64,000 nt of DNA from Macrostomum lignano (GCA_002269645.1 NIVC01000819.1:1-64000), one strand, 5' to 3'; shown: positions 1,503 through 56,460, counted from the stretch's first letter. Translations and numbers: made by a program. Notes: generated by a model from the sequence alone, not told the origin.

Positions 1503-2255
1503 ATGTTGCCATGGGTCTTCATCTCGCTCACTTCGACTGTTGGACTCTTGACAGCTGCCTCGGTGTTCGGTCAGCCCATTGTGCAATTCATTAACCACGT
1601 GGACTGCTGCCTGGACACTTTCGGTAACAGCTCGCATGGAGACTTGAACGGGCTGACGGGTGTGGCAATGCTTGGAGCCTATGATGTTGACCTTGCAAGA
1701 GGCGTCCTTGACAGAGACGACATGACCATCGAGTTCTGCAGTGGCGCCTGCGCCATGGGCAGATTTCGTTACTTCGGTCTGCGCGATGGGAGCGAGTGCG
1801 TCTGCGGGTCGACTGTGCAGCGTATTCCGCCGTGCAACGGTGGAGGCTGCGATGTTAAGAAGTGCGCCGGAAACAACTCGCAGTCCTGCGGTGGGACCAA
1901 AAAAATCAGTCTGCATGAAAACATCTACACATCAGGTGAGTTAAGATGTGGCTGTTGACAATGTTTTTGTTTAAAATAAGTTTTATTTCTCCGTTAACTT
2001 CCAGCCAATGGGTCCTACAAGTCGATGGCTTCAACCGAAATCGCCCTGATCACCGTGCTCGAAATGCTGGTCAGGAGGGTTTACTGGAGCCAGGAGGCCA
2101 CCGTGGCTTTTGAATGCCTGGCCGCCTGCCACCGCAGCCCGGACTGTCTCGCCTGCGCCTTCGTGCGGTCCAGCAGGATGTGCCGCCTCATGAGATTCGC
2201 CGCTGTGCCCAGCGAGGTCGCCAGCGAGGCCCAGTGGGTCTGGGTGAAGCTGTGA
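1503..2255 (+). CDS. Secreted WSC + PAN/Apple-like protein W1 (exons 1503-1935, 2005-2255; 227 aa)
   Basis: Hydrophobic N-terminus; WSC Cys pattern (MTIEFCSGAC..FRYFGL..ECVCG..C..C.G..CGG). Donor G|gtgagt at 1936 and acceptor ttccag| at 2004 give a 69-bp phase-1 intron that joins in frame to ECLAACHRSPDCLACAF..MCRL. Confidence 0.88.
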
Positions 2256-2989
2256 TCAGTGAGCGATGAGTTGAACTTGAGCAGTCCGTAACAGCGGAGC
2301 CATTATTACTGACAAATCGAGAGCCCCTCCTTGATTAAAATCTTTGTATTTCTTAGCCTACTTCTCTTAATTCTCTGTTAAAGTTAATAAAGTCACTTCT
2401 AAACTGGAGTTTGATGCTGGAAATGATTAGTTTTGAGCTTTGATTAACTTTGCTTGCTCTGCTGTGACTTTCTCTGATCAGAGTTATTTTCTGTTGCATC
2501 ATCAACGCCAAGATGGATTCCCAGCAAATATTATTCAATATTCTTGCATTGAAAATCATTGAAAAATATACGAGTAATATTGAGAAATTTGGTGACAACC
2601 GGTTGCGGAGTCGGCCCGCAGAGTCAGAAGCAGCACCTTCTGCACCGGCTGTGGACAAAGGACATTACGGCTCTACCCATGGTTTCCGTGCCGTGGCTTC
2701 TGCTTAGAAAAACGAGCGAGGGAGACCCAAAGCCCTCTAGGCGTGGTCCGTTCTTAAATCTTACTTTCAGTAGTTTGTGAGAGCATTAATTAGCATTATA
2801 TTCGGTCTTCCTGATTTTTTGTATTTTAACACCAACAATAACCTCTTCAATAGACGTGCTTCATTTAACGCCCATACTAACTGCAGTGCGGAGTGTTTGC
2901 CATCATAAAGTACATGTCAATGCACAATGCACAATTCACATACTAAGGGTACATGTAGCGCGTGTGTTGAGTACTAAATATTAGGAGGC

Positions 2990-3262
2990 ATACCCTGCGC
3001 CGGCGCCGTCAGATGCTTCTGGGCCACTGCCTCCGGACCCTTGGCCGCGGTGCGCCCGTCCCTCTGGCCCTCGCATTGCTACACCGGCCGACCGAGCAAC
3101 TGCGCCACGTCCGTGCACGCCCGCACTGTCGCTCTGACTGACTGCCTCATCGCTGACTTGCTGGACCCCTCAGGAGCCGCTGCTGTCAGCCTTTCCCGCC
3201 TGTTCTGCATGCGAGCGCGTGAGCGCGTGGGGTCTTCCCTCTGCATCTTAATAATAATAAAG
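2990..3262 (+). mobile_element. Degenerate 3' fragment of an RTE-like non-LTR retrotransposon
   Basis: Translates to LRRRRQMLLGHCLR..LALALLHRPTEQL, resembling the RT C-terminal RR..GH..R region, and is followed by a (TAA)n tail at ~3248-3260. Confidence 0.5.
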
Positions 3263-5915: not shown

Positions 5916-7008
5916 TCAGTTCCTCATCCAGATCCAGGCCGACTCGCCAGCGACGATCGGGGGCGCCAAGGCGAAGGTCGTCAGCCAGCAGGTGCGGCTG
6001 GACTGCCCGAAGGCGTATCCGAGGCAGGTTGGGTTGCGCTGGCAAGTGGCCGCGCATTTAATTTGGCCGTTGGCTGATGGCGAGGTGTCGTTCCAGTGGG
6101 TCAGGATTGACTGGCCTGCGTTTTTCACGATGCTGTTGGAGCTCGAGGCGGCCTTGGTGAACTTTGAACCGACTGTAAGTGAAGAAATGCGGCGTAGGGG
6201 AGTGAGGACCATGCCGTTCTGGTCTTAAATAAAAAAGGCTCTTTCTACAAATACGATACGTGCGCGTGCCATCTAGAGTCTCTTCTGTACTCGTACCGGT
6301 ATTTCGCAGTCTTGCACTGCCTCCAGAGTACATGACCAGTCGTCCCTAAGCTTCGGCTGACGTCATGACGACACTGAGCTTCTGAACTTTGAGTGTTGCG
6401 TCCTTCTACTTTAGTACATGTAGTCCTTGTTCACGACTCTGTTATGAATATATTCAGGGAACTTAGTTCTTCAGCCATAGTTAGACCTCTCAAGATTTCC
6501 CAGAGGGACTTCAGCTACTCAGGTGGCTACGCAACAAAGAACAGCTAAGGCTTTAGTTTTCTTTAAAGAAGGCTTTAAAGCCTCCTAGACGCGGGCTCGT
6601 ACCAGGCTGGTAGACATTTTCGTAGATGGAATTCCTGTAGGGTCCGCCGCACTTCTCCGACGCGTTGCCAGCGCAGTCCTGGTAGCAGTCGGCTTCGGCT
6701 GCGGATCCGTGGCTGCCGTAGGTTGAATCGCAGCTGCAAAAGGCGGTGGCCTGTAGAGCAAAGTAGCGAAATCTGCCAAGAGCGCAGATCCTGCCGCACA
6801 TGGACACCGTCATGTCCGGCCTGTACAGAATGCCGGACCCGACGCTCGTGGACGCGAAGGTGGAAAACGGCGCCATGCCGGTCAAGTCTCGGCTGGTGTC
6901 GTCCCCGTCCACATAGCAACCGATGTAGTTTGAGTGGCTAATTGTTGCTTGAGCATTCGCCATTGTGCTCAGGGCTGCTAGTACTAGGAGCAGCAAGGGA
7001 TGCAACAT
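5916..7008 (-). CDS. Secreted WSC + PAN/Apple-like protein W2 (exons 7008-6603, 6172-5916; 220 aa), the most divergent exon 2
   Basis: Signal peptide MLHPLLLLVLAAL; YIGCYVD..RDL..MTVSMC..IC..FRYFALQ..C.C..CGG. Donor CCT G|gtacg and acceptor cttacag|TC are in frame. Exon 2 encodes CAATCQRNPTCLGYAFGQSSRTCWL. Confidence 0.88.
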
Positions 7009-7071
7009 CCTGGAGCCTGGGCCCGGGGCCAGTGGGCGAGCTGCTTCGAGCTGAGGGCTGTCTTGAGTTAC

Positions 7072-7770: not shown

Positions 7771-10332
7771 TCACAGCTTCATCCAGACCCACTGGGCCTC
7801 GCTGGCGACCTCGCTGGGAACAGCGGCGAATCTCAGGAGCCGGCACATCCGGCTGGACTGCACGAAAGCGCAGGCGAGGCAGTTGGGGCTGCGGTGGCAG
7901 GCGGCGAGGCACTCGAGCGACACGGCGGCGGGCAGACTCCAGTGAGTGCTGACACTGAATCCTGGGTCAGACACCAGAGGCTGCGATGCTGCTGGCAGCG
8001 TCTTGAAGCCGCCAGTTGCTGAAATACCAGAGGCTTTGTTTTATTGTTGACGACAATCCAGGATACCCTAAAACTGCAAGTAATTCCCAGCAATATGCAT
8101 CCTAAGAAATACAGTAGTTTACTTGAAGAACTTATTGTTCATGCCCGTGTTACCCCTCTGTGCGGACGGAAATAGGAGGTTCCATATATTTACCATAGAT
8201 TTGTACCGCTGCTAGCTGGGCTGTGGGGGCAGAGCGTCTGTCGGGGTGTACATTCAGACCATAGACAAATTTTCGAGACAGTAAATAAGAGAAACAAGAG
8301 AAGAGAAGAAGAAGAAGAAGAGTTAAAAATTTAAGCTCCGATGGAATGCATTGTGAGACAGATCAACAAATGCAAATCGCAGCTGCTTCGAGTCTATCAT
8401 GGCTTGGATTTCTACACCCAACTTGGAGAACGGCAGACTAGAACAATCTACTTTGAGTGAAAGGAAGCAACCGACAGTTATATTGGGGAAAGACGGCTAC
8501 TAAAAATGTGAGCTGAAAACGCCACAGATGCCCGACTGCAAAATTGGGGCCCGCTGGCAGAATGAAAAGACAATGACTGTTATTTCAGCAGTCTTTTTGT
8601 GGTAATTTCGCGGTCCGCGGAGACTGTCTATGGTTGAAACCCATGATTTGAATCAACCATGTTTCAACTAGAGGTAGATATTGTCGGTTTAGAAGTATAG
8701 ATCACACGTGATAATTAATCGTTCTATGGAAAAGAAAGTCCGAGGATGCGTTTTTATCAGGCCGAGGGCGGATCCTTGGCTCAGCAAACAATTCTAAGAG
8801 TTCTTTTTGAGTCTAGTCTATGATCTGAGCCCAAGAGAAGATATGGCTGACGTGGCTTTGATGTGACATTAGTCTGGTCTGAACCAAAGTCACCAGATGT
8901 GGAAGGCACCTGGGTCCAGGTCAATTGAAAGTTTCTTAACACGCGCATGGCACGAGTGTTGCTCTATTCGATGCCCATATGAGGAGTTCCTGGGTGGTGC
9001 ACAATCGTTTTTGACAATCTAGATGATAATTTGGACATTCAAAACGAGAAACACTCTATGGCCAATGGCTGCTCTATGGCTGCGGCAGCTCGCTCCGTGG
9101 ACAGAGTCTGTGGCCAATCTAATCGATAAAAATTGCCATTCTAAATGAGAATTTCTTTCATCGCGCGCACCAGCAGCAGCAGAATGCCGCCTCAAACAAG
9201 TGAAGCAGATCGCCGTCGCCTGATCGATGCCATCAAGGCTGGGCACTCCATCAAAGTGGCAGCAAGGGTACTGCAGCTGCCAATGCTGCCATCCTTTGTC
9301 TTTAGTTCTTCTGCCTTTTAATCACTCTAGATTGACTTTTTGTTGAGTTCTTGTTCCGTTAATCAGTTAAAAATTCAAGCAATCTGTTGAAAACATTTGG
9401 CAGCGAAAATTATCACTTAAAATGGCATTTTATTATTTTGAATGTCCGAGTTCTCATTTAGAACGGCTTTTCATCGATTAGATTGTCCACGGACTATATG
9501 GCTCGCTGTATGCGTTTCTCATTGTGAATGTCCAAATTATCATTTAGATTGTCAAAAACAATTGTATCCACATTGATTGTTTATTTTGGCTCTCACTGAT
9601 AAATACTGAACTCTATTTATTGTATAGTTTACAGTTTGAAGCTTACACTTGATTTACCATTGATATATAAAGTCGCAGTGTTTGTTTCACAATGGGAGTT
9701 CTTAGAATTGTTCGCTGAGCGCAAATTTGAAGTGTAGGCAAGTTAGTGCGTTTCAATGGGGCTTCAATCTAAACAGCTGCCCATGACTGTAGAGTCTTCC
9801 GAACCAACTGACCTGGGAGCAACCAATTTAATCCTTGGTGGGAGAAATGAGCTGTTGAAGATTCGCTTTCCAATGTGCTCAACAATCCTGAGTCCATCAC
9901 TCGCTCACCGTTTTCATAAACCAGTTCGTAAATCGAATTCCTGAGCAGACCGCCGCAGATTTGTTTGGCATCGCCTGTGCAGTTCCGGTTGCATTCGGTC
10001 TCGGAGGCCGGCCCGTGGGAGCCGTGGCTCTGACTGCAGCTGCAGAAGCCGGTGGCCTGCAGGCCGAGGTACCTGAACCGGCCGAGCCAGCACAGCCTGA
10101 CGCACCTGCCGATGGTCATGTCAAAGCGGAACAGATGGCTCCCGGCGGGCTTGATCTGGCTAAATGGGCCAATGCGGGTGATGCCCGACAGGCCCGTCAA
10201 GTCCCTGGAGCTGTCGTTGCGGTCAACGAAGCAGCCGATGTAGCTGACGGACTTGACTGCCAGCTGTGCCGACACCAGCACGCTGCCAAGTGACAGCAGA
10301 GCTGCCAGCAGTTTTTGGAACGCCAGCTGCAT
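7771..10332 (-). CDS. Secreted WSC + PAN/Apple-like protein W3 (exons 10332-9909, 8018-7771; 223 aa; 1.9-kb intron)
   Basis: MQLAFQKLLAALLSLG signal peptide and WSC motif. Donor AAC G|gtgag at 9908 and acceptor atttcag| at 8019 give in-frame ATGGFKTLPAASQPLVSDPGFSVSTHWSLPAAVSLECLAACH. Confidence 0.8.
8258..8634. mobile_element. Possible MITE in the W3 intron
   Basis: 10-bp terminal inverted repeat ACCATAGACA (8258-8267) / TGTCTATGGT (8625-8634), extendable with one gap; no clear TSD. Confidence 0.3.
9184..9285 (+). pseudogene. Possible N-terminal HTH remnant of a Tc1/IS630-like transposase
   Basis: MPPQTSEADRRRLIDAIKAGHSIKVAARVLQLP has the spacing of a Tc1-type HTH start; no catalytic domain follows. 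Confidence 0.35.
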
Positions 10333-13528: not shown

Positions 13529-14284
13529 TCACGGCTTCACCCAGGCCCACTGGGCCTCGCTGGCGACCTCGCTGGGCACAGCGGCGAAGCTCATGAGCCG
13601 GCACATCCGGCTGGACTGCACGAAGGCGCAGGCGAGGCAGTTCGGGCTGCGGGGGCAGGCGGCGAGGCACTCGAAGGCCACCGTGGCCTCCTGGCTCCAG
13701 TAGGTGCTGTTCTCTGGCTGTCCGGGCGCGGTGGTGAGCATCGACTTGGTTGAGGCCACGCGCTTGAAGAGGCCGGTCTCTGAGCAGCAGCACAAATGCA
13801 GAAAAATGTAGATGGGAATCGTTAGCTAAAGGAACAGCAAACTTTTCTTACCGGGCGCATAGAAGTTCTCATAAATGGAGTTTCTATCGAAGCCGCCGCA
13901 AATCTGGCTGCTGTTTCCATGGCAGTTTGTGTTACACTCAGAATCTGATAGAGCGGCTCCGTGCAGTCCGTAGCTGTTGTCGCAGAAGCAGAAGCCTTGC
14001 GCCTGCAGACCGAAGTAGCGAAATCTGCCCAGGGCGCAGAGGCTGCTGCAGCTCTCGATGGTGACGGTGTGTCCATTGTAAAAGTAGGCGAACTCTATCT
14101 TATCAGTGAAATGCCCAATGGTCTTCAACCCACTCAGGCCTTTCAAATCTCTGTTGCTGTTGTCCCCATCAACAAAGCAGCCGATGTATCCGTGATGCAG
14201 CACGCTTGGCTGACTCATCGCCACCAGGAACAGCAGGGCCAGAGGCACGGATAGGAGGACAGTCAGGTGCACGGAGCGCTGCAT
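13529..14284 (-). CDS. Secreted WSC + PAN/Apple-like protein, type B copy 1 (exons 14284-13852, 13779-13529; 227 aa)
   Basis: MQRSVHLTVLLSVPLALLFLVAMS signal peptide and WSC motif. Donor CCC G|gtaag and acceptor ctcag|AG give a 72-bp in-frame intron. TATATAA lies at 14395-14389. Confidence 0.9.
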
Positions 14285-17520: not shown

Positions 17521-17543
17521 GAATCAACTCTCAGGATTTAGTG

Positions 17544-27403: not shown

Positions 27404-32619
<5,216 letters not shown>

Positions 32620-35819: not shown

Positions 35820-35965
35820 ACTAGCAACAGAAGCCGAAGCCACAGCAACAGAAGCCCAAGCCATAGCAACAGAAGCCGAAGCCATAGCAACAGAAGCCGA
35901 AGCCATAGCAACAGAAGCCGAAGCGTTAGCAACAGAAGCCGAAGCCATAGCAACAGAAGCCGAGC
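35820..35965. repeat. 21-bp minisatellite (AGCAACAGAAGCCGAAGCCAT)n, ~6-7 copies
   Basis: Read directly; homologous to the ~34-copy array at 49650. Confidence 0.93.
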
Positions 35966-36517
35966 CAGGAGGCAGGAGCAGAAGCACAGTTGGCTTTAAG
36001 TTTTCAATGCATTTCAACAGTGTAGTTGCTATTCATATCTCACTACTAAATAGTAGTGTAGTCGATTTCTTAAGATTTAACGCGCCAATGTCAGGTTGAT
36101 AACTCATTAACTTAGACAAGGGTTTCATAAAGAAGCATTTGCAGTAAACTGTCCCCAAAAAATTAACGGAATTTGTGAAACAAACAGCGTATTCTATAAC
36201 GTTGGGCTTTGAGTCCAGAGGCTGCATGATCAAGTCTCTGATTCTGCTAATAAAACTCTCATTTCCCTGATCGGTGCATTTCCTGTTGGATACTTGGATT
36301 TGAGATCAGTTGGATCAATATGTACAGCCAACTGCCTAGTATAACTCAATGGCTGTAACGGATATATGAAGAAATAATTAACAGTACCAGCCAAAAGGCA
36401 GCTTCTAGTTTTGCGATGCCATTATTTACTACCGTCTGGCAGCACTGCAAATTCAATCTGCCAAAATTCGTGTTCAGAGCTGCTTGTGTCTCCACGGCAG
36501 GTTATCAGCCGACAGGC

Positions 36518-37363
36518 TCACGGCATCACCCAGACCCACTGGGCCTCGCTGGCGACCTCGCCGGGGACAGCGGCGAATCTCATGAGGCGGCACATCCGGC
36601 TGGACTGCACGAAGGCGCAGGCGAGGCAGTCCGGGCTGCGGTGGCAGGCGGCGAGGCACTCAAAAGCCAGCGTGGCCTCCTGGCTCCAGTAGATGACGGA
36701 GCTGGCGGAGGCTGAGATGGTCGGCATGGCAGACGCGGCCATTCGCTTCAATACGGACCCGACTGCGGGTGAAGTTGAGTGAAAGCAGTTGCAGAGTGAC
36801 TTTCCGCTGTCAGGCATTCTGGTGACCAATGCTAAGCTTATAATCTGAGTGCATGGGAAGTACATCTTCATCGAACACAATAGCAAGTTAGATAGTACTT
36901 GTATTCAATCCGTTAAAGTCAAATAACTATTTGCAACCGTCGCATAGGAGATTTCGTAGATGGAGTTGCGGCCCCAGCCACCGCAAATCTGACTCGCATT
37001 TCCTCCGCAGGACACGCTGCAGTCCGACGGAGCAGCGGCACCGTGGGAGCCAAACGTGTTGTCGCAGCCACAGAAGTGCCTGCCCTGAACGCAGAAGTAG
37101 CGAAACCGGCCGTAGGAGCAGATCTGGCTGCACAGCTCCAGGGTCATCGAGCTGTCAGTGCGCACGAATGCAGGGACGTTCTCATGGTTGGCAAACATGC
37201 CAAGCGAGACGAGTCCGAGAAGTCCGGCCAAGTCTTTGTTGCCGCCGCCGCCATCCGCATAGCAGCCAACGTGGCTGAACCCCAGCGGCTGCGGAGGCAC
37301 AGCGACGGTGCAGCCGCCACCGCTGACGAGCAACAGCAGCAGCGAGAAAACAGCCGCATGCAT
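36518..37363 (-). CDS. WSC + PAN/Apple-like protein, type C copy 1 (exon 1 from 37363, exon 2 36762-36518; donor uncertain)
   Basis: MHAAVFSLLLLLV signal peptide and WSC motif; good acceptor cccgcag|TC. The family-position donor is missing; a weak phase-1 donor A|gttatt at 36927 gives an in-frame 226 aa product. Confidence 0.72.
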
Positions 37364-38309
37364 TTCACAGCTCAAATGCAGTTAAGAGCAGATCTGACGA
37401 AGCCGTTGCGGGAGTTGCGATGGGGATTTTCTACTCAGTTCTGTTGCTAGGCGAGGGTTGTCACAAAACTGAGGATGCTTAATTAACTTGCTGCTGACAC
37501 AATTGGCTGCTCAACCCGGAGAGACTCTAATAAACTTGGAGATGCACAGCAGGGCAGCAACGCTTCAAACTCCACACCAGCCAAGCAGCAGAAGCTCGAC
37601 CGTCTTTCCCACCGTGACTGAGTCGACAATGGCCCCAGCTGCATCTCTTTTGCATAGCTGTCCATTGCATGAAATTCTTTGTCTTAATCAGTCCCGTCTC
37701 TTACCCCTAGCTGAGCCGCTGTGGAATAATTAGCCTGCAAGTACCATCTCGTTGAGAATGTTACTGAGCCAGCAGAAGACAGCATGCGATGCGTTGCACG
37801 AAATGCAGTTATAGTCTCTGTTAGTTCTGATGGAAGATGAATGTGCTGCTGGCTCCTAACTTTGCGTGTCTCAGAATTCTTGAAAATGCCCCTCATTAGC
37901 GACTCAAAACTCTGCTTAAATTGTTCAGCTCAGGAGCATGGCTTTGCTCAGGTGATGATGGCGGGCTTGCTATTGTAGGTTGTGCTGTCAGTCAGTTTAT
38001 TGCTAGCTAGTGGCTAGAATATGGTCCATCAGGTATCCAGAAGTCCATTAAATTTTTCTACAAACAGAATCTCGCCATAGCTGATTCCCTTTGTGGGGAT
38101 TGCATGTATTGGGGATATTTGAAAAAAAGAATTAACAATAGGAGCCAAACGGTAGTTTTTAGATTCGCAATGCCATAATTTTCTTTCGTCTGCAGTTGTG
38201 TCGTAGTCTTTGTATTGTAAGCACATCATTCTCTCAGAAATCTCTCTGCGCAGCCGATTCAGCTGCGTACTAACCAGCGCGAGCTCTGCTTAACTTGCTG
38301 CATCAACTG

Positions 38310-38570
38310 GATCCTCAGGTAATTAGCATCTAGATACTCAGGTAATTAGCATCTAGATACTCAGGTAATTAACATCTACATCCTCAGATAATTAGCATCT
38401 AGATCCTCAGGTAATTAGCATCTAGATCCTCAGGTGATTAGCATCTAGATCCTCAGGTAATTAGCATCTAGATCCTCAGGTAATTAGCATCTAGATCCCC
38501 AGGTAATTAGCATCTAGATCCTCAGGTAATTAGCATCTAGATCCTCAGGTAATTAGCATCTACATCCTCA
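38310..38570. repeat. 23-bp minisatellite (TAGATCCTCAGGTAATTAGCATC)n, ~11 copies
   Basis: Read directly; homologous to the longer array at 52955. Confidence 0.95.
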
Positions 38571-39458
38571 GGCTGCTACCAAGGAGTGCAGATGGATACC
38601 AGCTGCCTTTGAAGTTACACAGTTAATGCGGAGATTCGCTATGAGTATACAATTTGAGTGCTCTCTTGGGCAGGTGAAAATCCGCGAAACTTTCAAGCAC
38701 AATTTAAGCAGCTTCTGGGCAGAAAATGGAAGTCGATTTTTCTAAGAATTGAAAACGATGTTAAGATCCTAATTAGGGCAAGCCACTTGTGTGAATCTAC
38801 GTTGTTCTCAGCTTCTCAGAATCGAGGTAGCAGCTCTTCTTGAAATAAATGTACTGCTTCAAATTTCCATCGTTCTGACGCATTTCAGTGCGTCACTGAC
38901 AGTCTGCACTTTCACTTTGATTACACTGCTCAATAGTAGCTTCATAACCGTATCTTACTACTTACTCAATAGTAGGCGATGATTTCTTAGGACTCAGCGG
39001 ATCGATGGATGTTTGACAGTTGATTGACTTCGGGCACAGTTAGACAGGTGTTTTACGAGCATGCCCATGATAGGAAACTGAAAACTCGCTAACTGGCTCT
39101 GCTTGGTTAAGTTTTGTCAAGACAGGTGGAAATCATATTACATTGCAGTATTAACATGTTTAACACCGAATTTAGTTGTTGGTTTTGCTTTGTCAATTCA
39201 GATTCTGCTTCACAATGGCGACAATCAATTTGGGGTGCCGCGAAAAAGTGTAAAAGAGCCACTTGGGGACAATTTTCAAAAGATAAGGAGACAAGGTAGA
39301 AAAATTGTTAACGTACGGTAGGGCAGTCTACGTTACTAATTAAAAACGCCTTTGCTAAAAAAAGCAACATTAAGTAATTGTTCTCTGCTTGTTTGCTCGA
39401 TTTCGCCATCCCAGAAGTTCTTCTCTCGAACTCATTTGCTTTTGTAGTTGCAAATTCG

Positions 39459-40230
39459 TCACGGCTTCACCCAGACCCACTGGGCCTCGCTGGCGATGTC
39501 GCTGGGCACAGCGGCGAATCTCATGAGGCGGCACATCCGGCTGGACTGCACGAAGGCGCAGGCGAGGCAGTCCGGGCTTCGGTGGCAGGCGGCCGCGCAC
39601 TCGATGACGCTTCCGGCCGTCTCGCTGCGGTAAACGATGGAGCTGGTGGAGGCTGCGATGCTCGGCATGGAAGCAACGGGAACTTTCGTTAGTTTCGGTC
39701 CAACTGTAAATTAGGAAGGAGTTTAAAAAGTTGTCTAAATCGTTAGGATAAAAACTGGTTTAACTTATTGAGAGAATCACAATTTTCTTGGCGCAGAACC
39801 CACTCGGTGGATACAGAGACTCATAGATGGAGTTCCTTGAGTCGCCGCCGCACTCCTGAGACGTGTTCCCTGTGCAAGGGTAGATGCAGTCGGCGGCAGC
39901 GGCGACGCCTTTCGAGCCGTAGGTCGAGCTGCAGCAGCAGAAAACGCGGCTCTGGGTACCGAAGTAGCGAAAGCGGCCGTAGGAGCAGATTTCTCTGCAC
40001 ATCTCCAGCGTCAGACTTTCTTCTCGGACAAAGACCGGGTTTCCTGAGTCATATGAGTAGGGTCCCAAAGTAGTGACCCCTTTCAGGCCAACCAGGTCCC
40101 GGTCCCCGTTGCCTCCGTCAACGTAGCAGCCAAGGTACTGATGGCCCAACGGCTGTGGCGGCAGCAGATGCCCTGAGCAACAATAGCCCTGCACCAGCAG
40201 CAGCAGGAGGGCCTGATCGGGGCGGAACAT
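39459..40230 (-). CDS. WSC + PAN/Apple-like protein, type D copy 1 (exons 40230-39804, 39703-39459; 223 aa)
   Basis: MFRPDQALLLLLV signal peptide and WSC motif; donor CCG A|gtggg, acceptor tttacag|TT, 100-bp intron in frame; TATA-like ATATAAAAA at 40316-40308. Confidence 0.9.
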
Positions 40231-41397
40231 TGGCTCAGCGACGGGTTGCGACGAATAACGGAGAGCTGAGTCCGAATCAGTCTGTTAATTTCAAGTTCTC
40301 CGCAGACTTTTTATATCGACCGGTGTCGCCCCCACCCCAATTGCTTTATTTGCCCGGCTCAGGGACTTCTTGATAGAGCATCTGAATTGGAAGCTCCCCA
40401 CCCCAAACATTTCATGGGGGAGCAAAACCGATAGCCAGTCAAATCAAGGCAATCGCCCAGTCTAGTAAGTCAGTTATGCTAGATGAAGCGATGGCTCAAA
40501 GCTCATAAAAATGTACTCGCTCTGAAGGGTCATCCCACATCATTGTCTAAGCCAACTTTGCCCGAAAAGGACCAAGGGATCCTTGCGGAAGAAACATTCT
40601 GTCTTATACAAGGTCTACAGGACGTCATGCAGGACGTGGACGCTCAATTGTGGTTTAATTGGACCCAGGGGTCCTAACAGTGTCTGAAGCTGTTTTCAAA
40701 TGCACATTTTGGCATGCAATGTAGCGGATATTATAAACCATTATTCTCAGTTGCTACGGAACTTGCCAAGTACGGAACTTCTGGTTGGGCTCAGCTGATT
40801 CAACGCAGATCAACCAACTGTGTGTGTGACACGTCTTCGAGCTTGCTGTATTTTCATACTCTCATGTTCCATTCGGAATTCCTGTTGGCTGACTGTAGGC
40901 TGCGCTGAAACGATGAATGTCAAATGCCAGAGAGCTGTGCCAGTGGATGCGCCGGAACTGTAAACCTGCTGTTTACTCAAATGAATCCACTGTGAGCTCA
41001 CACGTCAGCTGGGAGTCCAGACAGACACACGATACCTGACTCTGAACAAGCCAGCGTCAGGAATTTCCAAAGTCCGGAGTCAAAAAGCATTGTGAATTTC
41101 GACTGAGCTCGAATCCGGCCAGGCATTTAACTAAGGCAGTTAAATGGTGAGGAATGTCTGCTCAGCTGAGTAGCATATCCTAGTAGTTCTGCAGAATTCG
41201 CATCTAACAGGTTCAGTGTAGAATTTATTGTAGATAAAGGAATGATACACCATGTCAAAGGCTGGATAACATATGTTATAATGACAAAATCAAGTCATTA
41301 CCTGCAGTTATCTCCAATCTGCACTGGCAATGCATTCAGCTGGGCTTATGTGCTTCATCGGTTCCTCTTTCTGTAAAGCAGAGGTCGATGCTTTAGA

Positions 41398-45828: not shown

Positions 45829-45879
<51 letters not shown>

Positions 45880-46058: not shown

Positions 46059-46477
46059 AATAATATTGAGTTTTGTCTTGCTCTTTAGTTTTAGTTTAAA
46101 AGTGCTTCTACATGTAAATCGAAAGTAATTTTCTTGACCAAGAAGCTTTTAATCCTTTCAATGCGGCATTAAAGGCTTAAAAAGTTTCCGGCGCCATTAA
46201 ATCCATTGAAGATTTCATAAAAGCCTTCAAATTTAGCGACTTCGGTAATTGCTTGGGTCGGGATCACGTGGGGGGGTTTATTTGCTCTCTTTTAGCGCGT
46301 AGGATTCGGCGTAAAAGTGCGTGGTGGAAAGCAGGACTGTTCTGTATTTTTTACTCAGACTGCCGATCCCCTACGGTACGTCAGCTGTTTTGAGAAGTTA
46401 AGCTTGGTTCTGAATATCAGGTTGAATATCACTTGGCTCGTACTTCCTGTTTCCGCTTGCTTTATTGACGGTCAGGC

Positions 46478-47243
46478 TCACGGCTTCACCCAGACCCACT
46501 GGGCCTCGCTGGCGACCTCGCCGGGCACAGCGGCGAATCTCATGAGGCGGCACATCCGGCTGGACTGCACGAAGGCGCAGGCGAGGCAGTCCGGGCTGCG
46601 GTGGCAGGCGACGAGGCACTCGAAGACCGTAGCGGCCTCCTGGCTCCTGTAGGTGCTGTTCTCTGGCTGTCCGGGCGCGGTGGTGAGCATCGACTTGGTT
46701 GAGGCCACGCGCTTGAAGAGGCCGGTCTCTGAGCAGCAGCATAAAGGCAGAAAAATGCAGATAAATTTAGATAGGAATCTTTATCTAAAAGACCAGCAAA
46801 CTTTTCTTACCTGGCGCATAGAAGTTCTCATAAATGGAGTTCCTATCGAAGCCGCCGCAAATCTGGCTGCTATTTCCATAGCAGTTTGTGTTACATTCAG
46901 AATCTGATGAAGCGGCTCCATGCAGTCCGTAGCTGTTGCCGCAGAAGCAGAAGCCTTGCGCCTGCAGACCGAAGTAGCGAAATCTGCCCAGGGCGCAGAG
47001 GCTGCTGCAGCTCTCGATGGTGACGGTGGCCACATTGAAAAAGTAGGCCAAGTCTATCCTATCGGTGAAAGGCCCGATGGTCTTCAACCCAGTGAGGCCT
47101 TTCAAATCTCTGTTGCTGTTGTCACCATCAACAAAGCAGCCGATGTATCCGTAATGCAGCACACTTGGCTGACTCATCGCCACCAGGAACAGCAAGGCCA
47201 GAGGCACGGATAGGAGGACAGTCAGGTGCACGGAGCGCTGCAT
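46478..47243 (-). CDS. WSC + PAN/Apple-like protein, type B copy 3 (exons 47243-46811, 46728-46478; 227 aa)
   Basis: Paralog of B1/B2; donor CCA G|gtaag, acceptor ctcag|AG, 82-bp intron in frame. Confidence 0.9.
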
Positions 47244-48543
47244 GCTGGCGGATACAGCAAGCTGGATGAAGACTGAAGGCTGCTTGACGCTGCTGGACTC
47301 TGACTACAGGATGAGGATTCACTTGTGGACACCCTTCGACAAGATTACGAACAGGCCAAGATGCCTTTCAGACGGATGTGTATTATATGCGGACTTTTTC
47401 ACAAGAAACAATGGCATGAGTTGATGAAGTGCGGATGAAATTTCATTGGTTGCTTGCGACTTGCGGGGCTTGGTGACTCTGTAACTCTCCTGCACAGGCT
47501 GGTAAGCAGTTCAGACAAGTTGCCATGGTAACCAGCAAGACAACCAACCTAGCTTCCCTTTTCCATCTTGACCAAGCGGCAGAGAGGCAGAAAGGAAGCT
47601 CGCATTGTATCGCTTGATTGATACGGAAAGCGCCAAGCGAAAGCCGGAGTATATTCGGTTTCGCGCCTTTCACAAGAAACTTGTGCTAGCGTGGAAATCC
47701 ACCTACCTGAACACAGCCAATTCAACCCGATGGTCACGTGAAACACGCCACAGTGCACAGCATAAATAATCAGTCTATCTGACGTAGGATGCCGTCAGGC
47801 GCGAATTCAAGTAAAGAAAACTGAAAATGCAAACAAAAACAAAGCAGTAGCATTGGAAAGTGGAATAGCACCAAGTCACTAAACTATCTTATCGTTGCAA
47901 ATGGAACGATGCAATTTCCAAACCCCAGGGGCCCGAATCGGGAGTCAATCGGTAACGAGCCTAATGACCGAGGCAACGGAAGCCGAGTCAAGAAGCAGTG
48001 GTAAGAGCACCGAGTTTTGTTCCACTCTGCTGCCAGGTGAGGATTAAAGCATTGCAGCAAAGCTGAGACAGCTAAGCAAAGCTGCTCAACCCGGAGAGAC
48101 TGATAGATGCATGCACAGCACGTCAGTCTCAAACTCCAAAGCAGCGGAAGCATTGACAGCGCCGGCACTGATGCGTAACACCGGACTGCTGCAGAACTGC
48201 TGCTGAAGATCCATCGATACAGCCTCAGGCCGACTGTCTTTCCCACCGTGACTGAGTCAACTCAGGCATCAGCGGCATCTCTTTCGCATAGCTATCTATT
48301 GTATAGAATTTTTTGTCTGCATCAGTCTCGTCTCTTACCCCTGGCTGAATCGCTGTGGGAGGATTAGCCTGCAAGCACCAGCTTGTTGAGAATTCACTGA
48401 GCAAGCAGAGGACAGCAATGCGTGACAAGTCATGCAGCTCCTCCCATCTTTGGTAGCTGGAAAATGAAGCTGCCTCAGGCTCCTAACTCTGCGAGTCTCA
48501 GAATTTTTAAAATGTCTCTCATCAGCGACTCAAAACTCTGTTT

Positions 48544-49231
48544 GTTGTTAAACGGAGGTGGGAGCTGTTGCTACCCGCGGATCAGCCCTGAGAGGGGCTC
48601 TGCCGCTGATGGGCACTACCAGGGGCCTAAGCCCGAGATACCCACTAGACTAGTTGGTTAGACCCTAACGCCTTGGCTAGGGCTGGGTGTGAACTACTAA
48701 TAACCCAAGCCTATGGACTAAGGCACCGCCAACCCAACAGTGGAATCAGGGACGGTGCTAGGACCGAGTCCACCCAGGCCACCACCCAGCAGACAAGTCC
48801 TTGGGAGTGCGCGCGAAAAAAGGTTTGAAAAGCTTAGTTTGCTACTTAGAGCGGTCCGAGAGAGGGGAAACCCCAGAGGTCTACGGAAAAAGCTATAGTT
48901 AGGAATTTGGAATTTGGCTGAAAGGCTTGTTTCCAAGGGCGAGACTCCTATCAAGAGGTAGACATTGCAAGACCCTCCTAGAGGGCTGCGAGCCACAAGG
49001 GTATCACCTATCCAGCTCTAGATTGGAGGCCGGGCCAAGGGGTCGGGAAAGGGGCACAAGGCGCAAGAGGACCCGGACTCAGCCGGTATCCCCGATTCGG
49101 GACGAACTCCCTACCCAGGACTCCAGTCCACTGTCAGGATGAGAGCCGAGACACAAGGGCAGGGAGACAACCAGAGGAGCCAGCAGATGGACCAAGGTCA
49201 GAGCAAGATGGACCGGGCAGGGAGGGCAGAG
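48544..49231 (-). mobile_element. ~690-bp non-coding insertion with a 15-bp TSD, probably a 5'-truncated non-LTR retroelement
   Basis: CTCAAAACTCTGTTT at 48529-48543 and 49232-49246; empty site in the paralogs (~15837 and ~37905); minus-strand end ..TTTAACAAC(AAA). Confidence 0.75.
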
Positions 49232-49649
49232 CTCAAAACTCTGTTTAAGCTGTTCAGCTCAGAGCTCTCCTGGGATTGCCTCGCTCAGGTGATGCCAGGG
49301 ACTACTAAAACTAGTTTTAGTAGCATCACCTCGAAACTAGTTTCAGTAGTCCCTGGATGATGCTTGTTTTTAAAAAGCGACTCGCTCAGGTTTGATGGCG
49401 GGCTTGCATTGTAGGTGCTGCTTGCATTGCATTGTGGACATGGAGAACAGCCAAAAATGCCAAAATAACCCGTTTCAGGTCACGTCAAACGACTTTACTG
49501 TGCGGTATGATAAACCTGATGATAAGACCATTCGAACATGCCTGCACCGAAGCCCCCAAGCACAATGGAAGCTGAGGGCAGCTCAATTTGGTTAAAATCT
49601 TGAATCCCAGGGATGAAGAGCTGCTGACTAGAAGAGGCGAGAGATTATA

Positions 49650-50365
49650 GCAACTAGCAACAGAAGCCGAAGCCATAGCAACAGAAGCCGAAGCCATAGC
49701 AACAGAAGCCGAAGCCATAGCAACAGAAGCCGAAGCCATAGCAACAGAAGCCGAAGCCATAGCAACAGAAGCCGAAGCCATAGCAACAGAAGCCGAAGCC
49801 ATAGCAACAGAAGCCGAAGCCATAGCAACAGAAGCCGAAGCCATAGCAACAGAAGCCGAAGCCATAGCAACAGAAGCCGAAGCCATAGCAACAGAAGCCG
49901 AAGCCATAGCAACAGAAGCCGAAGCCATAGCAACAGAAGCCGAAGCCATAGCAACAGAAGCCGAAGCCATAGCAACAGAAGCCGAAGCCATAGCAACAGA
50001 AGCCGAAGCCATAGCAACAGAAGCCGAAGCCATAGCAACAGAAGCCGAAGCCATAGCAACAGAAGCCGAAGCCATAGCAACAGAAGCCGAAGCCATAGCA
50101 ACAGAAGCCGAAGCCATAGCAACAGAAGCCGAAGCCATAGCAACAGAAGCCGAAGCCATAGCAACAGAAGCCGAAGCCATAGCAACAGAAGCCGAAGCCA
50201 AAGCAACAGAAGCCGAAGCCATAGCAACAGAAGCCGAAGCCATAGCAACAGAAGCCGAAGCCATAGCAACAGAAGTCGAAGCCATAGCAACAGAAGCCGA
50301 AGCCATAGCAACAGAAGTCGAAGCCATAGCAGCAGAAGCCGAAGCCATAGCAACAGAAGCCGAGC
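49650..50365. repeat. 21-bp minisatellite (AGCAACAGAAGCCGAAGCCAT)n, ~34 copies
   Basis: Read directly; explains the ASVAMAS/LRLLLLW repeat ORFs. Confidence 0.97.
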
Positions 50366-50980
50366 CAGGAGGAAGGAGCAGAAGCACAGTTGGCTTTAAA
50401 TTTTCAATGCATTTTCAACAGTGTATTTGCTATTCATATCTTGCTACTAAATAGTAGTGTAGTCGATTTCTTAAGATTTAACGCGCCAATGTCATGTTGA
50501 TAACTCATTAACTTAGACAAGGGTTTCATAAAGAAGCATTTGCAGTAAACTGTCCCCAAAAAATTAACGGAATTTGAGAAACAAGCAGCGTTTTCTATAA
50601 CGTTGGTTTTTGAGTCCAGAGGCTGCATGATCAAGTCGCTGATTCTGCTAATAAAACTCTTATGTCCCTGATCGGTGCATTTCCTGTTGGATACTTGGAT
50701 TGGAGATCAGTTGGATCAATATGTACAGCCAACTGCCTAGTGTAACTCCATGTCTGTAACGGATGTATGAAGAAATAATTAACAATACCAGCCAAAAGGC
50801 AGCTTCGAGTTTTGCGATGCCATTATTCACTATCGTCTGGCAGCACTGCAAATTCAATCTGCCAAGATTTTGTGGCCACCTGCTGCTTCAACCAATTGTT
50901 CAAACATTTCCTTACGCAGACAAATGAGCTTTAGGTTCAGAGCTGTTTGTTTCTCCACGGCAGATTATCAGCCGACAGGC

Positions 50981-52011
50981 TCACAGCTTCACCCAGACCC
51001 ACTCGGCCTCGCTGGCGACCTCGCTGGGCACAGCGGCGAATCTCATGAGGCGGCACATCCGGCTGGACTGCACGAAGGCGCAGGCGAGGCAGTCCGGGCT
51101 GCGGTGGCAGGCGGCGAGGCACTCGAAGGCCACCGTGGCCTCCTGGCTCCAGTAGGTGCTGTTCTCTGGCTGTCCGGGCGCGGTGGTGAGCATCGACTTG
51201 GTTGAGGCCACGCGCTTGAAGAGGCCGGTCTCTGAGCAGCAGCACAAATGCAGATAAATGTAGATTTATGTAGGCAATCCGGGCTGCGGTGGCAGGCGGC
51301 GAGGCACTCGAAGGCCACCGTGGCCTCCTGGCTCCAGTAGATGACGGAGCTGGCGGAGGCTGAGATGGTCGGCATGGCAGACGCGGCCACTCGCTCCAAT
51401 GCGGACCCGACTGCGGGTGAAGTTGAGTGAAAGCAGTTGCTGCGTGACTTTCCGCTGTCAGGCATTCTGGTGACCAATGCTAAGCTTATAATCTGAGTGC
51501 ATGGGAAGTACATCTTCATCGAACACAATAGCAAGTTAGATAGTACTTGTATTCAATCCGTTAAAGTTAAATAACTATTTGCAACCGTCGCATAGGAGAT
51601 TTCGTAGATGGAGTTGCGGCCCCAGCTACCGCAAATCTGACTCTCATTTCCTCTACAGGACGCGCTGCAGTCCGACGAAGCAGCAGCACCGTGGGAGCCA
51701 AAGGTGGTATCGCAGCAGCAGTAGTCCCTGGACTGAACGCAGAAGTAGCGAAACCGGCCGTAGGAGCAGATCTGGCTGCACAGCTCCAGGGTCATCGAGC
51801 TGTCAGTGTGCACGAATGCAGGGACAACATTGCTGATAGCAAACATTCCGAACGAGGTGAGTCCCAGAAGTCCGACCAAGTCTCGGGAACCGCCGCCGCC
51901 GTCCTCATAGCAGCCAACGTGGCTGAACCCCAGCGGCTGCGGAGGCACAGCGACCGTGCAGCCGCCGCCGCTGACGAGCAACAGCAGCAGCAAGAAAACA
52001 GCCGCATGCAT
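50981..52011 (-). CDS. Type C copy 2: WSC exon, then a truncated C-type exon 2 (51410-~51272), then a complete B-type exon 2 (51231-50981); chimeric
   Basis: The C-type exon 2 stops after SPDCL and runs into the B-type intron tail (TCTGCATTTGTGCTGCTGCTCAG). Splicing 51576 to 51231 would be in frame (228 aa). Confidence 0.68.
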
Positions 52012-52954
52012 TTCACAGCTCAAATGCACTTAAGAGCAGATCTGACGAAGCCGTTGCGGGAGTTTCGATGGGGGTTTTCTACTCAGTTCTGTTGCTAGGC
52101 GAGGATTGTCACAAAACTGAGGATGCTTAATTAACTTGCTGCTGACACAATTGGCTGCTCAACCCGGAGAGACTCTAATAAACTTGTAGATGCACAGCAG
52201 GGCAGCAACGCTTCAAACTCCACACCAGCCAAGCAGCAGAAGCTCGACTGTCTTTCCCACCGTGACTGAGTCGACAATGGCCTCAGCTGCATCTCTTTTG
52301 CATAGCTGTCCATTGTATAAAATTCTTTGTCTAAATCAGTCCCGTCTCTTACCCCTAGCTGAGCCGCTGTGGAATAATTAGCCTGCAAGTACCATCTCGT
52401 TGAGAATGTTACTGAGCCAGCAGAAGACAGCTTGCAATGGTTGCACGAAATGCAGTTATAGTCTTTGTTAGTTCTGATGGAAGATGAATGTGCTGCTGGC
52501 TCCTAACTTTGCGTGTCTCAGAATTCTTGAAAATGCCCCTCATTAGCGACTCAAAACTCTGCTTAAATTGTTCAGCTCAGGAGCATGGCTTTGCTCAGGT
52601 GATGATGGCGGGCTTGCCATTGTAGGTTGTGCTGTCAGTCAGTTTATTGCTAGCTAGTGGCTAGAATATGGTCCATCAGGTATCAAGATCTCCATTAAAT
52701 TTTTCTACAAACAGAATCTCGCCATAGCCTATTCCCTTTGTGGGGATTGCATGTATTGGGGATATTTGAAAAAAAGAATTAACAATAGGAGCCAAACGGT
52801 AGTTTTAGTTTCGCAATGCCGTAATTTTCTTTCGTCTGCAGTTGCGTCGCAGTCTTTGTATTGTAAGCACATCATTCTCTCAGAAATCTCTCTGCGCAGC
52901 CGATTCAGCTGCGTACTAACCAGCGCGAGCTCTGCTTAACTTGCTGCATCAACT

Positions 52955-53790
52955 GGATCCTCAGGTAATTAGCATCTAGATCCTCAGGTAATTAGCATCT
53001 AGATCCTCAGGTAATTAGCATCTAGATCCTCAGGTAATTAGCATCTAGATCCTCAGGTAATTAGCATCTAGATCCTCAGGTAATTAGCATCTAGATCCTC
53101 AGGTAATTAGCATCCAGATCCTCAGGTAATTAGCATCCAGATCCTCAGGTAATTAGCATCCAGATCCTCAGGTAATTAGCATCCAGATCCTCAGGTAATT
53201 AGCATCTAGATCCTCAGGTAATTAGCATCTAGATCCTCAGGTAATTAGCATCTAGATCCTCAGGTAATTAGCATCTACATCCTCAGGTAATTAGCATCCA
53301 GATCCTCAGGTAATTAGCATCCAGATCCTCAGGTAATTAGCATCTACATCCTCAGGTAATTAGCATCCAGATCCTCAGGTAATTAGCATCCAGATCCTCA
53401 GGTAATTAGCATCCAGATCCTCAGGTAATTAGCAACTAGATCCTCAGGAATTAGTATCCAAATCATCAGGTAATTAGCATCTAGATCCTCAGGTAGTTAG
53501 CATCCAGATCCTCAGGTAATTAGCATCTAGATCCCCAGGTAATTAGCATCTAGATCCCCAGGTAATTAGCAACTAGATCCTCAGGAATTAGTATCCAAAT
53601 CATCAGGTAATTAGCATCTAGATCCTCAGGTAGTTAGCATCCAGATCCTCAGGTAATTAGCATCTAGATCCCCAGGTAATTAGCATCTAGATCCCCAGGT
53701 AATTAGCATCTAGATCCCCAGGTAATTAGCATCTAGATCCCCAGGTAATTAGCATCTAGATCCTCAGGTAATTAGCATCTACATCCTCAG
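52955..53790. repeat. 23-bp minisatellite (TAGATCCTCAGGTAATTAGCATC)n, ~36 copies, with a 137-bp higher-order duplication
   Basis: Variant block AACTAGATCCTCAGGAATTAGTATCCAAATCATC at 53434 and 53571. Confidence 0.95.
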
Positions 53791-54674
53791 GCTGCTACCA
53801 AGGAGTGCAGATGGATACCTGCTGCCTTTGATGTTACACCGCTAATGCGGAGAGTCGCTATGAGTATACAATTTGAGTGATCCCTTGGGCAGGTGAAAAT
53901 CCGCCAAACTTTCAAGCCCAATTGAAGCAGCATCTGGGCAAAAAATGGAAGTCGATTTTTCTAAGAATTGAAAGCGATGTTAAGATTCTAATTATGGCAA
54001 GCCACCTGTGTGAATCTACGTTGTTCTCAGCTTCTCAGAATCGAGGCAGGTCTTCTTGAAATAAATGTACTGCTTCAAATTTCCATCGTTCTGACGCATT
54101 TCAGTGCGTCACCGACAGTCTGCACTTTCACTTTGATTACACTGCTCAATAGTAGCTTCATAACCGTATCTTACTACTTACTCAATAGTAGGCGATGATT
54201 TCTTAGGACTCAGCGGATCGATGGATGTTTGACAGTTGATTGACTTCGGGCACAGTTAGACAGGTGTTTTACGAGCATGCTCATGATAGGAAACTGAAAA
54301 CTCGCTAATTGGCTCTGTTTGGTTAAGTTTTGTCAAGACAGGTGGAAATCATATTACATTGCAGTATTAACATGTTTAACACCGAATTTAGTTGTTGGTT
54401 TTGCTTTGTCAATTCAGATTCTGCTTCACAATGGCGACAATCAATTTGGGGTGCCGCGAAAAAGTGTAAAAGAGCCACTTGGGGACAATTTTCAAAAGAT
54501 AAGGAGACAAGGTAGAAAAATTGTTAACGTACGGTAGGGCAGTCTACGTTACTAATTAAAAACGCCTTTGCTAAAAAAAGCAACATTAAGTAATTGTTCT
54601 CTGCTTGTTTGCTCGATTTTGCCATCCCAGAAGTTCTTCTCTCGAACTCATTTGCTTTTGTAGTTGCAAATTCG

Positions 54675-55446
54675 TCACTTCTTAACCCAGACCCACTGGG
54701 CCTCGCTGGCGATGTCGCTGGGCACAGCGGCGAATCTCATGAGGCGGCACATCCGGCTGGACTGCATGAAGGCGCAGGCGAGGCAGTCCGGGCTTCGGTG
54801 GCAGGCGGCCGCGCACTCGATGACGCTTCCGGCCGTCTCGCTGCGGTAAACGATGGAGCTGTCGGAGGCTGCGATGCTCGGCATGGAAGCAACGGGAACT
54901 TTCGTTAGTTTCGGTTCAACTGTAAATTAGGAAGGAGTTCAAAAAGTTGTCTAAATCGTTAGGATAAAAACTGGTTTAACTTATTGAGAGGATCACAATG
55001 TTCTTGGCGCAGAACACACTCGGTGGATACAGAGACTCATAGATGGAGTTTCTTGAGTCGCCGCCGCACTCCTGAGACGTGTTCCCTTTGCAAGGGTAGA
55101 TGCAGTCGGCGGCAGCGGCGACGCCTTTCGAGCCGTAGGTCGAGCTGCAGCAGCAGAAAACGCGGCTCTGGGTACCGAAGTAGCGAAAGCGGCCGTAGGA
55201 GCAGATTTCTCTGCACATCTCCAGCGTCAGACTTTCTTCTCGGACAAAGACCGGGTTTCCTGAGTCATATGAGTAGGGTCCCAAAGTAGTGACCCCTTTC
55301 AGGCCAACCAGGTCCCGATCCCCGTTGCCTCCGTCAACGTAGCAGCCAAGGTACTGATGGCCCAGCGGCTGCGGAGGCAGCAGCAGCCCTGAGCAACAAT
55401 AGCCCTGCACCAGCAGCAGCAGGAGGGCCTGATCGGGGCGGAACAT
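54675..55446 (-). CDS. WSC + PAN/Apple-like protein, type D copy 2 (exons 55446-55020, 54919-54675; 223 aa)
   Basis: Near-identical to D1; donor CCG A|gtgtg, acceptor tttacag|TT, 100-bp intron. Confidence 0.9.
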
Positions 55447-56456: not shown

Positions 56457-56460
56457 TTTC

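Follow-up and report, generated by a model that had tools for sequence, protein, structure and literature searches.

A near-uniform second-exon segment in a tandem array of WSC-PAN genes of Macrostomum lignano

Introduction

How can neighbouring genes whose first exons have diverged to synonymous saturation carry, at the end of their second exons, a segment that is nearly the same in nine cases out of ten? This question is raised by a 64-kb stretch of Macrostomum lignano DNA (GCA_002269645.1 NIVC01000819.1:1-64000; hereafter, the window), in which ten genes, labelled G1 to G10 by their position along it, encode a WSC domain in exon 1 and a PAN domain in exon 2. According to their WSC exons, these genes fall into the types W1 (G1), W2 (G2), W3 (G3), D (G4, G5, and G8), B (G6 and G9), and C (G7 and G10). 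An earlier, sequence-only reading of the locus had described a secreted family with a variable exon 1 and an exon-2 core kept nearly constant by gene conversion or by strong selection. The analysis presented here favours a tandem WSC-PAN array in which the 3' part of exon 2 was probably homogenised by ectopic gene conversion, and whose products would be secreted, extracellular binding proteins.

Divergence along the genes

The core was taken as the last 138-nt module of exon 2, and the Nei-Gojobori proportions of synonymous (pS) and nonsynonymous (pN) differences were calculated on a codon alignment for 31 between-type pairs, G2 being excluded. Exon 1 yields a pS of 0.69 (0.59-0.79, saturated) and a pN of 0.39 (0.32-0.51), in agreement with the earlier description of WSC exons that are very different between types, whereas the core yields a pS of only 0.12 (range 0-0.27) and a pN of 0.05. 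Synonymous divergence is therefore not equal in the two parts, the comparison on which the sequence-only reading had staked its claim of homogenisation. At the nucleotide level, the nine cores are 89-98% identical, and the between-type nucleotide identity of the successive segments is as follows:

200 nt upstream: 0.54
exon 1: 0.60
intron: 0.45
first ~105 nt of exon 2: 0.60
core: 0.93
200 nt downstream: 0.52
shuffled baseline: 0.51-0.53

The homogenised part is, thus, a sharply bounded island of ~140-170 nt.

Purifying selection, combined with a strong codon bias, constitutes one way of holding such a core constant without any exchange between genes. Unlinked members of the family do conserve the C-terminal half of the PAN domain as well (pN 0.11-0.18), and the core is very rich in GC at third codon positions (GC3 of 0.91-0.98, vs. 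0.66-0.81 in exon 1), which limits the synonymous choice. Nevertheless, the core of the unlinked paralog L001, which is protein-conserved and GC3-rich, differs from the window cores by a pS of 0.38-0.50 (pN 0.11-0.18), and that of G2 differs from the other cores by a pS of 0.42 and a pN of 0.30, so that equal constraint and codon bias still leave a pS of ~0.4, not the mean of 0.12 found in the cluster. In addition, the codon variants of the nine cores are mostly nonsynonymous (17, vs. 12 synonymous; omega ~0.4), a pattern contrary to that expected from intense purifying selection, and the within-type pN/pS of exon 1, roughly 0.1-0.75, is comparable to the core omega. The near-invariance of the core reflects the youth of the sequences, not forbidden replacements. 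As the core tree also contradicts the exon-1 tree, with adjacent genes of different type sharing variants, selection and codon bias without exchange are a very unlikely explanation.

The discordance of the separate trees, in line with homogenisation, is easily followed from gene to gene. Exon 1 groups the genes as D (G4, G5, G8), B (G6, G9), and C (G7, G10), whereas the cores pair G6 and G8, G3 and the adjacent G4, and G5 and G9, via shared variants at core positions 100, 31, and 75; each core nonetheless retains private variants. The shared stretch does not begin at the same point everywhere: the ~30 nt located 5' of the core (YWSQEATVAF) are common to G1, G4, G5, G6, G8, and G9, but not to G3, G7, and G10. 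For example, G6 (B) has the YWSQEAT-type segment, while G7 (C), to which it is closely related, retains the ancestral sequence of the B and C types. The raised GC3 of the core is also what GC-biased conversion would produce. Regarding the cause of the uniformity, the first of the two options left by the sequence-only reading, gene conversion, is supported by the discordance, the tracts, and the low pS, while strong selection is not supported as the cause, given the omega of ~0.4 and the L001 pS of ~0.4.

A functional element at the nucleotide level, be it an RNA structure, a target of small RNAs, or an antisense transcript, could also constrain all codon positions of the core, and long open frames do exist on the antisense strand and in the other core frames, as expected for GC-rich sequence. 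However, the G8 core region (46478-46650), the sole sequence folded, is no stabler than its dinucleotide shuffles (z = +0.39), the window contains no Rfam match, and the core variants are found at all codon positions, which makes such an element extremely improbable.

The G9 chimera and the growth of the array

Ectopic gene conversion, the preferred explanation, finds a companion in G9. Compared to its counterpart G6, this gene carries an insertion that interrupts its own B-type exon 2 after 13 core codons, at ~51272. Past the junction (a short microhomology), the sequence runs through the last ~35 nt of a D-type intron and an entire D-type exon 2 before returning to the B-type 3' flank. The inserted block (50944-51273) is 94-95% identical to the exon-2 regions of G4, G5, and G8. 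Read straight through, G9 is frameshifted; with its exon 1 spliced to the D-type acceptor (both phase 1), it encodes an intact protein of 228 aa, whose WSC domain is of B type and whose PAN domain is of D type. G9 is direct evidence of ectopic recombination among cluster members, and such exon-2 replacement is a second route to uniformity. The view of the ten genes as plain members of one family consequently holds for their number in the window, but not for G9, which is a recombinant.

Could exon replacement account for all the uniform cores, a whole exon 2 and part of the intron having been inserted into members, so that the cores are alike by recent common descent? G9 is precisely such an event, at a microhomology junction inside a B-type core and with an intact alternative acceptor. 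In the other eight genes, however, exon 2 opens with 100-110 nt that differ from type to type (identity 0.60), with B and C related there as they are in exon 1, and identity climbs only inside exon 2, at variable points, not at the exon/intron boundary as replacement predicts. As a general explanation, replacement is therefore judged unlikely.

The D-B-C triplet is found twice, at 33.8-40.5 kb and 46.5-55.75 kb, with 93-96.5% identity (self-BLAST). Two minisatellites in the triplet differ in copy number between its two versions: a 21-mer counts 7 copies (35822-35967) vs. 34 (49655-50367), and a 23-mer counts 11 copies (38310-38572) vs. 36 (52956-53791). More minisatellite arrays lie at 1-470, 16061-16619, 41423-42212, and 44773-45673.

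A repeat-rich genome, with minisatellites and transposons within the cluster and two triplets that are about 95% identical, raises the question of an assembly or polishing artefact, in which multi-mapping short reads would have homogenised a 140-nt repeat, or the triplet would be a mis-joined haplotype. A change from ~60% to 93% identity is nonetheless beyond the reach of polishing, because the reads would not cross-map. The same core is also present in independent UniProt models from other copies or assemblies (P0001, P0004, P0170, and P0178), and private variants are kept in each core. An artefact is, for these reasons, given hardly any credit.

Array layout and gene models

The 46-residue module quoted in the sequence-only reading has ten copies in the window, one on the plus strand (2112-2249) and nine on the minus strand (tblastn). 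Its near-invariance in nine of the ten genes, the inverted W1 gene included, is verified: the quoted peptide is matched at 91-98% identity by nine copies, and at 50% by that of G2 (5922-6059). All ten copies are followed by a stop codon at most two codons past the module end, and upstream of each one lies an ATG-initiated open reading frame (ORF) of ~140 codons, encoding a hydrophobic N-terminus and a WSC domain. With all ten proteins as tblastn queries, exactly ten loci and no extra fragments were found in the window. The common two-exon plan, as first described, applies to all of them, with a GT-AG intron in phase 1 of 69-1890 nt, and the predicted spliced proteins are small (220-228 aa). 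G1 is the sole inverted gene of the array. The coordinates of the genes and duplicated blocks are the following (a slash marks the splice donor site):

1503..1935, plus strand: G1 (W1) exon 1, leader and WSC (ORF, donor ACATCAG/GTGAGT; WSC 42.5 bits; UniProt identity)
2005..2255, plus strand: G1 exon 2 (PAN, stop included), homogenised core 2112-2249
6603..7008, minus strand: G2 (W2) exon 1, leader and WSC (ORF, splice model, Pfam)
5916..6172, minus strand: G2 exon 2 (PAN), core 5922-6059, not homogenised and without the fifth cysteine
9909..10332, minus strand: G3 (W3) exon 1, leader and WSC; intron of 1890 nt
7771..8018, minus strand: G3 exon 2 (PAN), core 7777-7914, with core variants common to neighbour G4
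13852..14284, minus strand: G4 (D) exon 1, leader and WSC
13529..13779, minus strand: G4 exon 2 (PAN), core 13535-13672
34168..34597, minus strand: G5 (D) exon 1, leader and WSC (UniProt identity of the spliced protein)
33843..34093, minus strand: G5 exon 2 (PAN), core 33849-33986
36928..37363, minus strand: G6 (B) exon 1, leader and WSC; weak donor A/GTTATT
36518..36762, minus strand: G6 exon 2 (PAN), core 36524-36661; the putative converted tract also takes in the preceding YWSQEATLAF
39804..40230, minus strand: G7 (C) exon 1, leader and WSC
39459..39703, minus strand: G7 exon 2 (PAN), core 39465-39602; the tract starts only at the core
46811..47243, minus strand: G8 (D) exon 1, leader and WSC (UniProt identity of the spliced protein)
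46478..46728, minus strand: G8 exon 2 (PAN), core 46484-46621; AlphaFold2 model with a PAN fold
51576..52011, minus strand: G9 (B) exon 1, leader and WSC
51272..51410, minus strand: remnant of the own B-type exon 2 of G9, cut after 13 core codons, junction with D-type intron sequence
50981..51231, minus strand: inserted D-type exon 2 of G9, core 50987-51124 (inserted block 50944-51273)
55020..55446, minus strand: G10 (C) exon 1, leader and WSC
54675..54919, minus strand: G10 exon 2 (PAN), core 54681-54818
33802..40535: segmental duplication copy 1, D-B-C triplet G5/G6/G7 (self-BLAST)
46473..55750: segmental duplication copy 2, D-B-C triplet G8/G9/G10 (self-BLAST)

A 32-nt tandem repeat (5.2 copies, 96% matches; 10331-10495) abuts the G3 start codon on its upstream side, where it may affect the promoter or the 5' UTR.

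Several models can be compared with public M. lignano predictions: spliced G1, G5, and G8 are letter-for-letter the UniProt entries A0A1I8IH79, A0A1I8GYH3 (P0002), and A0A1I8H511, respectively. A phase-1 intron is also found at the homologous site in two unlinked relatives annotated at the NCBI, P0007 (NIVC01000038.1) and P0082 (NIVC01003153.1). In G6 and G9, the weak A/GTTATT is the sole phase-1 donor, with which the G6 product has a family-typical length of 226 aa. Another donor for these two genes, ACG/GTTGCA (phase 0, with an upstream acceptor), was dropped in favour of A/GTTATT and the homologous acceptor. An exact-protein look-up of G1 and G5 among assembled contigs, aimed at spliced RNA-seq contigs, returned nothing on record.

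Exon 2: a single PAN domain

The earlier outline of the genes stands for the signal-like leader, the WSC domain, and the phase-1 intron; its last part, a linker followed by a ~55-aa cysteine module, gives way to one PAN domain occupying the whole of exon 2. A profile built from twelve diverse exon-2 sequences of the wider family matches PAN/Apple structures, namely SML-2, a lectin of Sarcocystis (E 8e-5), MIC4 of Toxoplasma, and the N domain of hepatocyte growth factor (HGF); the HGF alignment extends over profile positions 7-71, almost all of the exon. Of these 12 sequences, 11 are matched by Pfam PAN_1 (best E 2.2e-8). In the full-length proteins, PAN (PF00024) scores 18.4-23.3 bits vs. a cut-off of 21.4, which three of six pass, and exon 2 taken alone reaches 25.0 bits.

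Structure prediction agrees with this assignment. The AlphaFold2 (AF2) model of G8 exon 2 (predicted local distance difference test, pLDDT, 77.3; predicted template modelling score, pTM, 0.64) has the element order beta-beta-alpha-beta-beta-beta, and its top 50 Foldseek matches in the Protein Data Bank (PDB) are all of PAN/Apple fold, one being the related MANEC (probability up to 1.0, template modelling score [TM] ~0.6). The full-length AF2 model is unusable (pLDDT 45.7), and its Foldseek matches are not significant. Exon 2 is therefore a single PAN domain, in which the variable N-terminal strands are followed by the helix and C-terminal strands that had been seen as a 'module'.

Four cysteines (C-x3-C-x5/6-C-x9-12-C), together with L, F, and A, are invariant in this second domain throughout the family. 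These cysteines are spaced as the PAN core disulfides, although their pairing is not readable from sequence. The same four core cysteines and spacing are shared with the PAN/Apple lectins and ligands (SML-2, TgMIC4, HGF N domain, and plasminogen PAp; PF00024), at profile E-values of 8e-5 to 1e-2, a TM of ~0.6, and only 15-28% identity. Two features set the M. lignano domain apart. It lacks the outer disulfide of the Apple subtype (factor XI/prekallikrein), since conserved cysteines occur neither ahead of the helix nor beyond the fourth core cysteine, while the window cores have an extra, fifth cysteine (C-L-A-C; e.g., 46577-46579 in G8), present in nine of them and absent from G2 and from most distant relatives. 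Due to this extra residue, the cysteine count is odd in the D-type proteins, G1, and G3, which makes an intermolecular disulfide possible.

Exon 1: leader and WSC domain

The WSC assignment is supported by Pfam in all six types tested (PF01822, 38.4-59.1 bits vs. a cut-off of 27.8), and, with the PDB profile matches and the Foldseek search of the exon-2 model, both domain names given in the earlier reading are supported. Eight WSC cysteines are invariant (C36, C79, C83, C99, C101, C116, C120, and C128). In the CGG motif, for which a role in WSC domains has been described (PMC9024836), the first G is invariant, and the second one is replaced in G9 (CGS) and in P0007 (CGA). The nearest solved relative of exon 1 is the Kremen1 WSC domain (E 5e-13, PDB sequence search with a full-length profile); this search returned WSC only, and PAN surfaced only with the exon-2 profile. 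As the WSC domain is itself a variant of the PAN/Apple fold (PMC9024836), each protein consists of two PAN-fold domains, one per exon.

Kyte-Doolittle hydrophobicity (19-residue window) stays below 1.3 beyond residue 30 in nine of the ten proteins, and the G9 maximum of 1.82 belongs to a segment inside the WSC domain, so that no transmembrane-like segment was found beyond the leader in any of the ten by this measure. The C-terminus lies 46 residues past the first PAN cysteine. As a leader is present and there is no other hydrophobic segment, the proteins are predicted to be secreted.

The best-known WSC proteins share the eight-cysteine domain with its CGG motif, but differ in what surrounds it. 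In the fungal cell-wall sensors Wsc1-3 of yeast, the WSC domain and a Ser/Thr-rich region are followed by a transmembrane segment and a cytoplasmic tail, neither of which is found in the M. lignano proteins. The vertebrate Kremen1/2 proteins, of which the Kremen1 WSC domain is the best solved relative, are organised as Kringle-WSC-CUB, while Pfam reports only the WSC and PAN families in the M. lignano proteins, without Kringle or CUB. Unlike both, the latter are small, predicted to be secreted, and end with a PAN domain.

Proposed mechanism

Taken together, the observations suggest the following history. The array grew by tandem and segmental duplication (the D-B-C triplet being doubled, with about 95% identity), and the WSC exons of the six types diverged to synonymous saturation. 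Meanwhile, ectopic (non-allelic) gene conversion would have written again and again over the 3' 140-170 nt of exon 2 in all genes but G2, the inverted G1 among them, leaving one nearly uniform, GC3-enriched sequence across the nine. In the PAN domain, this stretch encodes the helix, strands beta3-beta5, and the four core cysteines. The tracts would begin at varied points in exon 2 and end with the homology, at or just past the stop codon; G2 would have diverged too far to go on exchanging. G9 stems from a related, illegitimate event, which pasted a whole D-type exon 2 and an intron tail into a B-type gene.

Concerted evolution limited to a domain or an exon, by ectopic conversion in tandem families, is general and well documented. 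The features commonly encountered are found here: tandem paralogs, a segment with a low synonymous divergence and a high GC3, conflicting trees, varied tract ends, and a diverged drop-out. What differs is the extreme contrast (pS 0.12 vs. a saturated 0.69), the tract amounting to half of one domain, the participation of an inverted member, and the preservation of a recombinant intermediate (G9). The WSC+PAN architecture is new, and the domain-limited concerted evolution is textbook but unusually clean, not unprecedented.

Several points weigh against this reading. The tracts end at the stop codon or within ~40 nt past it, B- and D-type genes sharing ~40 nt of 3' sequence; such an end is not predicted by conversion alone, and our explanation is either that homology has been lost further 3' or that longer tracts are selected against. 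The C-terminal half of the PAN domain is conserved in unlinked paralogs (SSRMCRLLRFAAVP.EVASE.EW.WMKL), so that protein-level constraint is real and selection contributes. Short-read polishing of a repeat-rich assembly could have slightly exaggerated the identity. Of the five AF2 models computed for exon 2, a single one is confident, with Foldseek E-values of 0.01-0.3. Splicing and conversion are deduced from genomic sequence, and the function from the domain families alone.

Function and significance

Both domain families are extracellular carbohydrate- or protein-binding families, and the PAN structures nearest by sequence are galactose-binding lectins; this points to extracellular glycan- or protein-binding proteins, in which the WSC domain may constitute the diversifying surface and the PAN domain a common second binding or docking domain. 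The sequence-only reading had conjectured a variable sensor with a constant effector, for innate recognition or as a mucus or adhesive component. As the omega is ~0.4, we lean towards the uniformity of the PAN half-domain being a by-product of conversion in the only segment that was similar enough. The alternative is a diversified recognition repertoire, in which this uniformity is selected for a common partner or a cross-link through the fifth cysteine, and the WSC domains bind different glycans. Their ligands would then be, for example, microbial or diatom beta-glucans, and conversion would keep the docking surface constant. Such a repertoire would be a flatworm analogue of the lectin-type immune repertoires of invertebrates, and the first function attributed to a WSC+PAN protein; its chances are nevertheless considered small.

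No new kind of molecular system comes to light here, and the interest lies mainly with molecular evolutionists and the Macrostomum community. The locus offers a compact natural experiment of 55 kb, in which old, synonymously saturated paralogs carry one uniform 140-nt segment, with built-in controls: a non-participant (G2), an inverted participant (G1), and a recombination intermediate (G9). It could serve to measure how long the tracts of non-allelic conversion are, how much homology they require, and how GC-biased they are, in a flatworm model for which transgenesis and RNA interference are available. A further outcome is an unannotated family, apparently restricted to Macrostomum, of predicted secreted proteins with two PAN-fold domains each.

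The wider family

A HMMER scan of 1.84 billion representative sequences with a family profile yielded 8075 matches, mostly multi-WSC proteins. Among the top 150 of these, those with an uninterrupted match that runs from WSC almost to the C-terminus comprise ~177-230-aa proteins and long fused predictions containing such units; every source looked up was M. lignano, with strongly diverged PAN domains. The ten genes, therefore, do not make up the family described earlier on their own: the array belongs to a larger M. lignano family, the other members of which have divergent PAN domains. Restriction to Macrostomum is provisional, as the matches listed score at least ~145 bits and few macrostomid proteomes are public. 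Word-index searches returned M. lignano proteins, save for one unrelated two-WSC JGI protein; with the exon-2 profile, just three more proteins were obtained, all from M. lignano. The public protein set lacks the B and C types (word-index search with G6), and G2 and G3 are publicly present only inside the fused prediction P0170. Two other family loci, L001 and L002, are singletons, with no second cluster at the DNA level. In P0013, a fused prediction from another cluster, the WSC part is 67% identical and the C-terminal part 81%, the same tendency in a weaker form.

P0170, P0013, P0015, and P0178 are models of 600-2700 aa that fuse neighbouring members, antisense GC-rich ORFs, and minisatellite translations. 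P0170 holds an exact G2 and a variant G3, which shows that a second, slightly different copy of the cluster exists in an assembly.

Databases only use the names 'WSC domain-containing protein', 'Apple domain-containing protein', and 'hypothetical protein', and no paper on a WSC-PAN family was found with searches on Macrostomum or flatworm WSC, apple domain, gene conversion, and Mlig013640. This matches the initial impression that no named family has this minimal architecture. The sole M. lignano WSC protein discussed in the searchable literature is that of RNA815_80.4, a transcript specific to the prostate glands (Arbore et al. 2015, PMC4490696). It is also a small, secreted-type WSC protein, but was rejected as a family member, being a different, AT-rich gene with two WSC domains and without PAN; it says nothing direct about the expression site of the WSC-PAN genes.

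Mobile elements in the window

Two elements lie between G4 and G5. The first, a BEL/Pao LTR retrotransposon (19865-25629, minus strand), has long, open ORFs for gag-pol, with DUF1759, aspartyl protease, reverse transcriptase (RT), Peptidase_A17, integrase, and DUF5641 domains. The second (27404-32619, plus strand) is an apparently intact non-LTR retrotransposon, with an ORF1 of 489 aa, without Pfam match, and an ORF2 of 1249 aa with endonuclease, RT, and RNase H.

Beyond the array, the AT-rich region 56100-64000 (~40% GC) has the dense ORFs typical of a Polinton/Maverick-like element and runs past the window end. It includes a weak double-jelly-roll capsid match (57569-58630, minus strand), an A32-type packaging ATPase (60446-61246, plus strand), and ORFs at 63258-63961 (minus strand) in which a DNA polymerase B-like YTDTDS motif was recognised by eye.

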